Shown one piece after another: positions 4,522 through 60,085 of a stretch of DNA of 64,000 nt. The notes beneath the pieces were generated by a model. That model had not been told where the DNA came from and searched no databases. It saw nothing but the letters and a program-made list of their open reading frames with translations. Numbering within the stretch: the first letter of the stretch is position 1; every line of letters starts with the position of its first letter. The position numbers and the translations under genes are program-made. The DNA is from Vitrella brassicaformis CCMP3155. Taxonomy: Eukaryota; Protista; Chromerida. The stretch covers positions 1 through 64,000 of the forward strand of contig CDMY01000350.1 of the NCBI GenBank assembly GCA_001179505.1, given 5' to 3'.

Positions 4522-5650
4522 TCACCCCACCACCGTCCCCCTGTCGATGACGTCGGTCTCCAACTCGAATCGCCGCAGCAGACGGCGCCACAGAGGCTCC
4601 GAAATGGGGAAGCGGATAGTGAGTGGTGCAGGCGCATCAGCAGCAGAAGCCTCGGTCGTCCGCAGGAGGATGCCGTTAAACCCCACCACCAGATGGGCAG
4701 CGATGGTCTCCTTTTCGCGGCAGCCACTCACAATGACATCACGATAGTCCGTCACGTCACCACCATCCATATTGCCCCAGTCATAGCGCCAGTCGACATC
4801 GATGCCCAGATCCTCTGTGATGGCATCGGTGCTCAGCAGACGGCCGTAGTGAGGGTCGTCACGGCCGATGGGTGCAAAGAGCACCCTTTTGTGATCCACG
4901 CCCTCTCCATCCGACCAGCAGACGAGCATCGTCTGCAGCAGGAATGCCGAAAAGGAGGGGTAGAAGATCGCCCTGTCGGATGACAGGGTTGGTCCGCTTG
5001 TAGCCCTCAGCATATCGATGGCCGCCCGGCAGCTCACCCAACGACACCACACGAAATGTCACACCGCCAATCCGATAGGCCCCGCTGTCGTTGGCTTGCT
5101 GCAGCGCCAATCTGGTCCCTCCGCATGTCAGCTGCTGGCCGATGATGGCGTAGAGGGCCATGGCGAGTGGCAGCTGGTGGAAGGCCGTTGCTGTGGGGAG
5201 CGAGTCAGCCGACAGACAGAGAGGCCGCGTCGCATTGGCAGGGGTCAGCCGGTAGATGAATGCCATCCGAAGGAACCGCCCCATCGCCCGCCACTCCTCG
5301 CCACTGCCCCGCTCCAGCACATAGACCACCTTCAAGCCGGCCTCCACATCACCGCCAATGTCGAAGGCCAACACGTCCGCCACGCCGAGACGGCTGAGGG
5401 CCTTGTTGATGTGCTGCTGGACAGCGTTGAGCAGGGTGCTGTTGACGGTCTCCACAGTGTGGCCCAGCAGCTCCTGTTGCCGAGTGCGGGTGGCGATCTG
5501 CGAGCGGAGAGCGGCTCGTTTGGCATCGTCAGTCGCCATGGCCATGGCGGCCATCTTGCTGATGGGCAATGACAGGTCAAAGAGGTCGGCGGGCTGGAAG
5601 AGGGCAGGGCTGGGGGGACGGGACGAGGGCGCTGTGCCAGTGGGCTGCAT
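4522..5650 (-). pseudogene. Intronless family member, class A (BC-box-like N-terminus), frameshifted near 4960-4985
   Basis: ORF 4859-5650 matches 31417-32547 up to TNPVIR. The remainder (FYPSFSAFLL...DVIDRGTVVG) is in the other frame, ORF 4522-5052. Confidence 0.85.
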
Positions 5651-5707
5651 CGTGACTGTCTTGAGGCCTCAACGAAGTGTGACAGGAGAGAGAAGGACGC
5701 ACCGGCA

Positions 5708-5765
5708 AACCAACGCGAGCTGGCGAATGAGCTTGCAACCAACGCGAGCTGGCGAATGAGCTTGC
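5708..5765. repeat. Perfect 29-bp tandem duplication in a bidirectional promoter
   Basis: AACCAACGCGAGCTGGCGAATGAGCTTGC occurs twice back to back (5708-5736, 5737-5765). Confidence 0.95.
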
Positions 5766-5810
5766 ATCTTTTCTCTCGGAGATCCGGTCTGTTAGGCGCA
5801 TCATCGCATC

Positions 5811-56902: not shown

Positions 56903-57678
56903 CGTCAGTGTCCTGAGGTCTCATCGAAGCGTCACTCAAGACACGGAAAAATAGCAGTGTGTGTGAATTTTGACGCCTTCCCTGCCTCTCTGACTGTCCT
57001 CTCACCTTCATGACTGTCCTTTGCGATTGAGAGACCCATCTGCGAGCTTGGCTTGCAGACCTTCTCTTTTTTCCCGTTTGGTGACAACAGGGCCGCCTGG
57101 GGTGTCGGTGAGATGCACAAACAGCTGCCGAGATGGTATCGATCACCACAGATCTGTCACCTGACTCACCTCCCTGACCGGCTCTGATCTGACGAGTTGA
57201 GGTGAGATAAGGCGGGCAGGAGAGTCTGATGACCACAGTGGTTTCTGTGTGTTGGTGGCAGATTTCCGGCACTCTCCGACAGAGGAGGACAGCCCTGTAC
57301 CGCAGGTATCTGAGACCATCAGGGGCAGCCAAGCCGCCGACAGAGGTGCGCGAAGGCAAAGAAAGCCGCTCGGATGTTCACAGATCGATGAGGCGCCACA
57401 CATGCATTCGCTCATATGTGGGTGTGCAGATGTCGGGTGCTGGTGATGATGAAGGTGGTGCCGCTAGCTCTGACGAGGCATCCTCATCGTCATCGACGAG
57501 AGGGTCGTCGCATTTCCGGCAACACTCAGTCACACACTACAGGGTAAGAGGACAGCAAGAAGAGCAGCCAAGAAAGGCAAAGAAAGACTCGAAAAGCTCA
57601 AAAATTTTGTTCGTGTCTGACGATGTGTGGCTGCAGATCTCTCACACGACGCCTCGCTCAGACCCCAGGACAGTCAGT

Positions 57679-58770
57679 ATGCAGCCCACTCGCACACCGC
57701 CCGCCTCCCGTCCCGCCAGCCCTCCGCTCTTCCAGCCCGCCGACCTCCTTGACATCGCCATCAGCAAGGCGGCTGAAATGGCAATGTCACCCGACCCCAA
57801 CAGACGCGCCGCTCTCCACTCACAGATCAGCAGCAGCGATCCTGATGATGAGAACACGGTGCTCCATGAGGCGAGGCGCCACGTCGAGAAGGCCTTGGGT
57901 CCTCTCGGCCTGCAAGACGTTTTGGCCTTTGACATCGGCGATGATCTGGAGGCCGTCTTGAAATTCGTCTATCTGATTGAGCGGGGCAGTGACGGGGAGT
58001 GGCGAGCGGTGGGGCGGTTCCTTCGGCTGGCCTTCATGTACCGGCTCACCCCTGCCAATGCGACGCGGCCTCTGCGGCTATCAGCCAACGCACTGCCCAC
58101 AGCAACGGTTTTCTATCAGATGCCACTCGCCATGGCCATCTACAAGATCATCGGACAGCAGCTCACATACAGAGGGACCCGCCTGGCGCTGCAGCAAGGC
58201 AATGACGGGAGCTATCGGATCGGCAATGAGGCGCCCCTTCGTGTGGTACCGTTGGGCGAGCTGCCTGCCGGCCATCCCTATACTGAAGGCTACAAGGAGA
58301 CCGATCCCGTCATCCGCTGGGGCGAAAACTGGCTCTTTCCCTCATTCTCGACATTCCTGCTGCGCCTGCTGGCTGGCAGGTGGTGCTGTCAACAAGGGGT
58401 CGACTGCATGAGGGTGCTCTCAGCACGAGTCGGCCGTGATGACCACCGCCGTGGCCGCTTGATAGCCGAGGGCATCACAGAGGATCTGGGCATCGCTGTC
58501 AACTGGCGCAACGACCGAGGCAACCTGAATGGTGATCATGTGGATGAGTACCGTTTTGTCATACTGTGCGGCTTCAGACGAGGCGAGACGGTCGCTGCAT
58601 ATCTGTGGGTGACGGCCCGCCACATCGAGCTGTGGACGACCGAGCGACGCGCTTCGAATCTACCCTCGCTCGTCTTCCGCTTCCCCCTATCAGTGCCCCT
58701 GTGGTGTCGTGTGTTGGCGCGCTTCGAGCTGGAGACCGACGTCATCAGCAGGGTGAGGGTGCTGGTGTGA
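57679..58770 (+). CDS. Intronless family member, class A (divergent), intact, 363 aa
   Basis: Family start MQPTRTPPASRPASPPLFQPADLLDIAISKAAEM at ATG 57679, preceded by the family 5' leader. The track's upstream extension from 57229 is probably non-coding. Confidence 0.85.
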   Translation: MQPTRTPPASRPASPPLFQPADLLDIAISKAAEMAMSPDPNRRAALHSQISSSDPDDENTVLHEARRHVEKALGPLGLQDVLAFDIGDDLEAVLKFVYLIERGSDGEWRAVGRFLRLAFMYRLTPANATRPLRLSANALPTATVFYQMPLAMAIYKIIGQQLTYRGTRLALQQGNDGSYRIGNEAPLRVVPLGELPAGHPYTEGYKETDPVIRWGENWLFPSFSTFLLRLLAGRWCCQQGVDCMRVLSARVGRDDHRRGRLIAEGITEDLGIAVNWRNDRGNLNGDHVDEYRFVILCGFRRGETVAAYLWVTARHIELWTTERRASNLPSLVFRFPLSVPLWCRVLARFELETDVISRVRVLV

Positions 58771-59032
58771 GTGGTGATTGAGCGTTGGTGCATTTTATGG
58801 GTCTGCCTGTCTGAGGGGGTCGAGCAAGGGCTATGGCGATATCTGTTGATGTGTGACCGATTTTCGTGAATCGTTGATTTTTCTTTCGGAGACAGAAGCA
58901 TTCTGAATGTGCACAAATAGCCTTGGATCGCTACCTTGAGAAGGAAATGATCACACAACGAATCACATACACACACTCAAAAACAATTCCCATGCCACCG
59001 GCCCCACAGTGCTGTCTTTCTACTCGTACAAT

Positions 59033-60085
59033 TCAGAGGGACGGGTGGGTTGCGTTTTCAGTATCGAGACCGAATGGACGCAGCACGCAGCGCCATACCG
59101 GCATCGACGCAGGGTAGCGGACAGCAAACGATGCAGGCGCATCAGCAGCAGGCCGCTCAGTGGTGTACAGCTTGATGGAGCGGCCTGACGATACGCACAG
59201 ATACGCAGCGATCGTCTCGTTGGGTCGGAAGCCGCTCACAAGCACACGACGAGAGTCCGTCACCCTATTATCATTCAGATCGCCCCGATCGTAGCGATAG
59301 TCGACAGCGATGCCCACATCCTCTGTGATGGCGTCGGTCCTCAGCAGACGGCCATAGCGAGGGTCGCCACGGCCAATTCCTGCAGTGAGCACCCACTTGT
59401 GACCCGCCCCCCATCCATCTGACCACAAGACGAGCAGCGTGTGCAGCAGGAATGTCGAGAATGAGGGAATGAGTAGGACGCCCTATCGGATGACAGGGTC
59501 GGTCCGCTGGTAGCCGTCAGCATAGCGATGCCCGCCCGACAGCTCAGCCAACGGCACCACACGAAACCGCCCACCGCCGATCTGATAGCTCCCATTGCCG
59601 ATTCGATAGGCCCCGTTGCCGGCTCGCTGCAGCGCCAGGCTGTGTGTATTGTGTGTGAGCAGGTGGCCGAATAGCCGATAGATGGCCATCGTCAAGGGCA
59701 GATGATGGAATGCCGTCCGTCTGGGAAGGTGGGCTGTCAGCCACTGAGCCGACAGCACCAGGGGCAGCCCATTGGCAGGGATCAGCCGATAGATGGCGGC
59801 CAGCCGGATGAACCGCCCCATCCCACGCCACTCATTGCTGCCCTGCTCCAGAACATAGGCCGCCCGCAGCACATACGTGAATGGGAGAGGGGCGGTGCGG
59901 TCGATGTCGATAAGGCCGGTGAGTGAGTGGCGGGCGAGGGAGCCGTCGATGCGCTCCACCAGCAGAGCGGCCGTCACTAGAGCCGCCTTCGCTTGGCAGG
60001 TCGCTCGGACACAGACCGCCTCATGGACGAGAAGGGACGGCAGAATGCGCCTCCGCCACAAGTCGTCGGGCACCGAATCAGACAT
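59033..60085 (-). pseudogene. Intronless family member, class B, with an in-frame TAG at 59483-59485 and a divergent C-terminus
   Basis: ORFs 59483-60085 and 59033-59428 are in the same frame, split at DPVIR*G where 29727-30761 has DPVIRWSG. It ends FGLDTENATHPSL rather than FGLE.DVIDRG.VVG. Confidence 0.85.

Follow-up and report, generated by a model that had tools for sequence, protein, structure and literature searches.

A fast-evolving gene family of Vitrella brassicaformis with a predicted SUKH-like core and two kinds of N-terminal head, one of them F-box-like

Eight copies of one gene family, c1 to c8, lie in the 64,000-nucleotide stretch of Vitrella brassicaformis DNA analysed here (the window: positions 1 to 64,000 of contig CDMY01000350.1, assembly GCA_001179505.1), and they probably represent a lineage-specific expansion of ubiquitin-ligase receptors which resemble FBXO3 in combining an F-box with a SUKH-like domain and whose heads are exchangeable. 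An initial annotation of the window had placed eight paralogues here, three of them disrupted, and listing and translation of the open reading frames (ORFs) recovered all of them at those positions, five open and three broken. The common core of about 270 aa that it had described is also real, with protein identity among the copies of 53-78% and DNA identity of 69-85%. Two kinds of head precede this core. Type A is carried by c3 (29727-30761, minus strand), an open ORF of 344 aa, and by the pseudogenes c2 (20690-21725, plus strand) and c8 (59033-60085, minus strand). Type B is found on c4 (31417-32547, plus strand; 376 aa), c6 (55778-56902, minus strand; 374 aa) and c7 (57679-58770, plus strand; family ATG at 57679), all open, and on the pseudogene c1 (4522-5650, minus strand), and a type B-like head is present on c5 (46021-47115, plus strand), which is open, its ORF running from 45949 and its family ATG being at 46021. 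The copies c3 and c4 are arranged head to head, as are c6 and c7, and c8 lies tail to tail with c7.

Each broken copy carries lesions of its own, as seen by ORF reading and tblastn. In c1 a frameshift lies at about 4961-4971, where the alignment to c4 passes from frame -1 (5650-4961, residues 1-231) to frame -2 (4971-4525, residues 229-376); c2 combines a frameshift at 21009-21034 with an in-frame TAG at 21237-21239; and c8 has an in-frame TAG at 59483-59485 (codon 201), together with a C-terminal end that is divergent over its last ~10 residues. The N runs of the window (853-1152, 49367-49666 and 54165-54464) overlap none of the copies, the closest copy ends being 47115 and 55778. Collapsed or duplicated copies arising as an assembly artefact were ruled out because the smallest synonymous divergence (dS) among 19 intact copies was 0.21, which makes them old paralogues and not assembly duplicates. 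Recoding of stop codons was also rejected, since the lesions among six-frame genome matches include TAG, TGA and TAA alike.

The resemblance to FBXO3 comes from predicted structure. AlphaFold2, run with the family alignment, gave models of high confidence for full-length c4 (predicted local distance difference test score, pLDDT, 88.4; predicted template modelling score, pTM, 0.85) and for residues 1-222 of c3 (pLDDT 95, pTM 0.90). Each model has helices in the head, then a long linker helix accompanied by a short strand and an alpha+beta middle domain, and in c4 these are followed by a C-terminal domain of beta-alpha-beta4-alpha-alpha order that is TBP-like. On the DNA, the predicted parts of c4 (plus strand) correspond to about 31462-31602 for the head, 31768-32181 for the SUKH-like middle domain and 32182-32544 for the TBP-like domain, and those of c3 (minus strand) to about 30657-30761 for the F-box-like head, 30096-30515 for the SUKH-like domain and 29730-30095 for the C-terminal domain. 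When the c3 model was compared with an exhaustive structural aligner, FBXO3 was the best single match and covered both domains, followed by YobK, 2icg, 4iqn, 2pag, Knr4 and Syd, with the Tdi1 immunity protein also among the matches. Furthermore, the F-box regions of beta-TrCP1, FBXO31, Cdc4, Fbs2, FBXW8, SLY1, Fbw7 and FBXO42 all aligned to residues 1-85 of this model, and the full-length c4 model independently returned the same SUKH matches. Zhang, Iyer and Aravind list 2PRV, 3FFV, 2PAG and 2ICG among the structures that define the SUKH superfamily and count Knr4, FBXO3 and SKIP16 as its members (PMC3113570). By predicted fold, the bacterial SUKH (Smi1/Knr4) immunity proteins, such as YobK (2PRV), 2ICG, 2PAG and Syd (3FFV), would be among the closest known systems.

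DSSP assigned to residues 83-222 of the c3 model helices at 86-98, 113-126 (in two segments), 131-142 and 203-217, and strands at 109-111, 152-154, 160-162, 168-171, 192-195 and 198-200. The SUKH core has been described as four helices and six strands, a hairpin plus a 4-stranded meander (PMC3113570), and the predicted middle domain, with about four helices and six strands, matches that description by element count, a comparison that does not extend to the pairing of the strands. An ESM Atlas model was poor (pLDDT 0.40) and gave no usable structural match. The initial annotation had recognised no domain in the core; this stands for sequence searches but not for the predicted structure, which resembles the combination of F-box and SUKH in FBXO3, and the core thus matches a known domain in part, by predicted structure only.

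The type A heads start with MSD..LW and contain a motif, L/V-P-D-E-L-W...I-L...L, that reads like an F-box. Their hhalign comparison with 11 independent Vitrella F-boxes, profiled from genomic matches that pass Pfam, gave a probability of 71% (P 3.6e-5) with 39 columns in register and the L-P...L...I..L pattern, and reversed profiles used as controls reached 0.2%. We regard this as a moderate, not a strong, profile similarity, and the model of the type A N-terminus is predicted to adopt the three-helix F-box fold. In addition, three distant ORFs of the same superfamily, two on contig C859 and one on C983, pass the Pfam F-box model (32.1 bits against a cut-off of 24.3) and also match the family profiles (E 1.8e-31 with a broad profile and 1.5e-6 with one of the close family); because these F-boxes stand in the same ORFs as the core, a bona fide F-box sits at the head position in distant members. 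Three members already bear the name "F-box domain-containing protein" in UniRef, and Skp1 is present in the genome (C278:121927-122786). The type B heads differ: they start with MQPTG and consist of a proline-rich stretch and a short amphipathic helix. Their hhalign probability was 1.2% against the F-boxes and 2% against the type A heads, and the idea that they are degenerate F-boxes was rejected for lack of any profile signal. The Elongin-type BC-box pattern [STP]Lxxx[CSA]xxx[AILV] occurred at the corresponding alignment position in 17 of 37 heads other than type A and in 5.7% of shuffles, but it is a loose pattern and fits the window's own type B copies poorly.

A number of results weigh against an FBXO3-like receptor family. 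None of the sequence methods run connects the core with SUKH: Pfam scans of the copies and of 45 + 47 relatives found no domain for the core and no SUKH family at E <= 10, Pfam SMI1_KNR4 (PF09346) had no match at E <= 1 in the whole genome, and sequence and profile searches of PDB with the family were blank. Foldseek against PDB likewise returned nothing below E 0.1. Regarding the heads, the Pfam F-box and F-box-like models matched none of the window copies, and F-box-like appeared in only two of the 47 relatives, both below threshold (E 0.0037 and 0.025), while five of the eight window copies carry the type B head, which by profile comparison is not an F-box. As to a BC-box role for that head, a genome search with Skp1_POZ found the Skp1 locus only and no Elongin C, although short exons may escape such a search. 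Lastly, windows of pN/pS (the ratio of nonsynonymous to synonymous differences) showed no clear hypervariable surface or patch along the gene, and their high, flat profile fits mere relaxed constraint too.

The family is large and narrowly distributed. The genome searched was the V. brassicaformis assembly, 72.7 Mb in 1064 scaffolds, in which the window is part of contig C350. A six-frame search with c4 as the query gave at least 113 matches from 326 candidates; about 15 loci lie on the 106.5-kb contig C350, and more clusters occur on C240 and C377. A profile of 45 members run against 1.84 billion representative proteins gave 138 hits, and among the 20 of these that were looked up, 17 are from V. 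brassicaformis, two from JGI contigs and one (P0192) from a Logan/ENA contig; every database relative bearing an organism name is Vitrella. The copy number and range that the initial annotation had left to a hidden Markov model search came out at no fewer than these 113 matches and at nearly Vitrella only. Beyond the close family there is a wider, intron-bearing superfamily with more than 400 candidate places in the genome: when distant Vitrella paralogues were used as queries, P0154, whose gene is split into six exon pieces, led to a further 404 candidate places and P0148, split into two, to a further 360, and the window clade is thus one intron-poor branch within a superfamily of several hundred genes. 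At the sequence level this superfamily is almost confined to V. brassicaformis. P0192, on an AT-rich 31-kb contig, is the sole homologue over the whole core outside named Vitrella records (hhalign probability 95%, 262 columns); as a query it found no relatives in the database. Its presence in an AT-rich organism suggests that the core domain predates its expansion in Vitrella.

Several members are identical to MMETSP transcripts, which shows that the family is transcribed at least in part. The genes had been called unannotated, which is not so, since they stand in GenBank, but only as "unnamed protein product". Some public models (among P0013/P0035, P0167, P0174, P0198 and P0126/P0147) join the core to CBM_25, ubiquitin, cyclin C-terminal, ankyrin or TPR domains, and these may be real fusions, with upstream exons spliced onto the cassette described below, or merged models.

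The data support a family that evolves fast and decays often, by birth and death, as the initial annotation had proposed. Pairwise dN/dS among the 19 intact copies was 0.52-0.98 (median 0.66) and below 1 in all 171 pairs, and pN/pS was 0.4-1.0 in every 15-codon window, with the lowest values in conserved blocks of the middle domain. In-frame stops (TAG, TGA or TAA) interrupt 28 of the 113 genome matches. In a tree of the core, one clade unites all three type A copies of the window with those type A genes on C240 that are paired with type B genes, and the type B copies are scattered, on long terminal branches, among copies from other contigs. Head-to-head pairs of a type A and a type B gene are recurrent, with c3/c4 in the window and two pairs on C240.

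The exon structure indicates what was duplicated. The copies had been described as intronless, and this is true of the whole conserved ORF, which is one exon, but not of the public models of c5 and c7, both of which have two small 5' exons. Mapping of the public proteins P0046 (c5) and P0026 (c7) onto the plus strand of the window placed the terminal exon of c5 at 46006-47112 (stop codon to 47115) behind 5' exons at 45633-45665 and 45851-45922, and that of c7 at 57637-58767 (stop codon to 58770) behind 5' exons at 57262-57345 and 57430-57543. The small exons are bordered by GT..AG, and the terminal exon opens at a conserved acceptor (CAG) 18-42 nt 5' of the family ATG. This CAG and a leader of about 45 nt form the 5' edge of the unit, and were found ahead of c4 and c7 (31372-31390 and 57634-57652) and also at 46003-46020 (c5). 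Similarity of DNA between copies extends from ~40 bp 5' of the ATG to ~20 bp 3' of the stop. What has been repeated is therefore a cassette made of one terminal exon, complete with splice acceptor and leader. This leader also precedes the type A pseudogene c2 by ~100 nt (20587-20605), accompanied by a short relic of a type B ORF start, a hint of head swapping between subfamilies.

This structure bears on the suggestion of the initial annotation that the copies spread through RNA or as a mobile cassette, neither of which is borne out. A retrocopy would not carry a splice acceptor, and a unit that starts at the acceptor used in public models argues against retrocopies and for duplication at the DNA level. 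A burst of retrogenes, with reverse-transcribed copies of a parent that had introns spreading by way of RNA, could draw on the contrast between the split genes of P0154 and P0148 and the unbroken ORF of the window clade, and on a copia-type reverse transcriptase ORF at 558-3377. However, a comparison of flanks found around the copies no repeats, terminal repeats, shared flanks, poly(A) tracts or target-site duplications; the unit starts at what looks like a working 3' splice site, with introns placed just upstream in the public models, and not at a transcription start as expected for a processed retrogene; the copies sit in local clusters and head-to-head pairs and are not dispersed; and at most one ancient event of intron loss suffices. 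We therefore consider such a burst very unlikely. The family could also be the ORF of a transposable element or an integrated virus, given its high copy number, its many broken copies and its lack of a Pfam domain, but the absence of shared flanks, terminal repeats and any transposase, reverse transcriptase or capsid partner, the blank Foldseek search of viral predicted structures (nothing below E 0.1), the cellular-type heads, the intron-bearing paralogues and a genome with only 1.5 Mb of transposable elements (PMC4501334) leave this with hardly any probability.

Two other explanations accept the duplication and question the function. The expansion could be largely functionless, with a terminal-exon cassette copied by unequal recombination and drifting to pseudogenes, so that most intact copies would be under no selection for protein function. 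The high dN/dS, the pN/pS of up to 1.0 along the gene and the proportion of broken copies (three of eight in the window and 28 of 113 matches in the whole genome) are what this would predict, and yet dN/dS stays below 1 in every pair, the D-P-V-I and T-T-E blocks persist between copies at dS > 0.5 and recur in an unrelated AT-rich organism, some members are transcribed, and AlphaFold reached a pLDDT of 88-95 from only 45 family sequences, which indicates preserved covariation. On balance we regard this explanation as unlikely. The proteins might instead be SUKH-like binders independent of any ubiquitin ligase, for example stoichiometric inhibitors of toxins or nucleases like the bacterial SUKH proteins, with the heads serving as oligomerisation or localisation pieces. 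The non-F-box head of five window copies, the structural matches to YobK and Tdi1 and the nature of bacterial SUKH proteins as expanded immunity proteins (PMC3113570) agree with this. On the other side, type A heads and distant members carry F-boxes, FBXO3 is the best single structural match over both domains, and no toxin-like gene adjoins the copies, whose neighbours are ankyrin, cyclophilin, transporter, TIP41 and copia genes, which makes ligase-independent binding quite improbable.

The FBXO3-like explanation is thus the one that we favour. The protein would be composed of an exchangeable short N-terminal head, a linker helix, a SUKH-type (Smi1/Knr4) alpha+beta domain and a TBP-like alpha/beta C-terminal domain. 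The type A head would be a very divergent F-box, giving c2, c3 and c8 the FBXO3 layout of F-box plus SUKH with another C-terminal domain. From this layout we infer Skp1 binding and substrate recruitment, and with them any biological role: the type A head may dock on Skp1 and a cullin ligase, and the SUKH-like and C-terminal domains may hold a substrate that is then ubiquitinated. In c1 and c4-c7 the same core would stand behind a different short helical head that is loosely like an Elongin-type BC-box. Duplication of DNA on a local scale, frequently yielding head-to-head pairs, would have multiplied the terminal-exon unit.

In animals and plants, FBXO3 and SKIP16, respectively, are F-box + SUKH + ApaG substrate receptors of SCF ligases, and the predicted type A layout is alike in its F-box and SUKH-like parts. 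The Vitrella family differs in showing no detectable sequence similarity to them, in having a TBP-like C-terminal domain in place of ApaG and, compared with FBXO3, in its hundreds of copies, most of which in the window have a non-F-box head. Lineage-specific expansions of F-box receptors are known from the FBA and FBK families of plants and the F-box/FTH families of C. elegans. The Vitrella family resembles these in numbering hundreds of paralogues that lie in clusters, in its abundance of pseudogenes, in an elevated dN/dS and in combining a conserved ligase-docking head with a variable binding part, and is unlike them in that its binding domain is of a different, so far unnamed kind, its head is exchangeable (A vs B) and its host is a chromerid alga. 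For chromerids, which are free-living and related to the parasitic apicomplexans, we know of no published expansion of F-box receptors. The paper on the Vitrella genome makes no mention of this family (PMC4501334). FBXO3 in eukaryotes is reported to be vertically inherited without lineage-specific expansion, and the SUKH-like reading, if true, would contradict the published view that eukaryotic F-box/SUKH proteins exist as single copies passed on vertically (PMC3113570). Several hundred Vitrella proteins listed as "unnamed protein product" would then also gain a testable function, and exchangeable heads on a terminal-exon cassette would offer a simple model for the assembly of new ligase receptors. 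A bolder and unlikely proposal is that Vitrella has recast the bacterial immunity fold as a large and diversifying set of receptors, tethered to ligases by exchangeable docking heads, which would recognise viruses, parasites, toxins or non-self and mark bound targets for destruction; this would be the first lineage-specific F-box/SUKH expansion in a eukaryote.

The neighbouring genes, modelled from Pfam pieces and public proteins mapped onto the window, are split genes as the initial annotation had stated: for the cyclophilin, the amino-acid transporter and TIP41, individual ORFs yield no more than partial Pfam matches. The left end of the window, which is richer in AT, contains a 939-aa ORF on the minus strand (558-3377) that combines a reverse transcriptase of copia type (RVT_2, E 6e-54) with a retroviral SH3-like domain; this is a remnant of the pol gene of a long-terminal-repeat retrotransposon, broken by the N run at 853-1152. 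An unbroken ORF of 733 aa with ankyrin repeats (33509-35710, minus strand) lies between copies of the family and is another long single-exon gene in this intron-rich genome. In addition, an 80-bp element, 86% identical between its two occurrences, is present at ~57350-57430 in the spacer of c6 and c7 and at ~29290-29370 downstream of c3, and may represent either a short repeat or a regulatory element common to both places.

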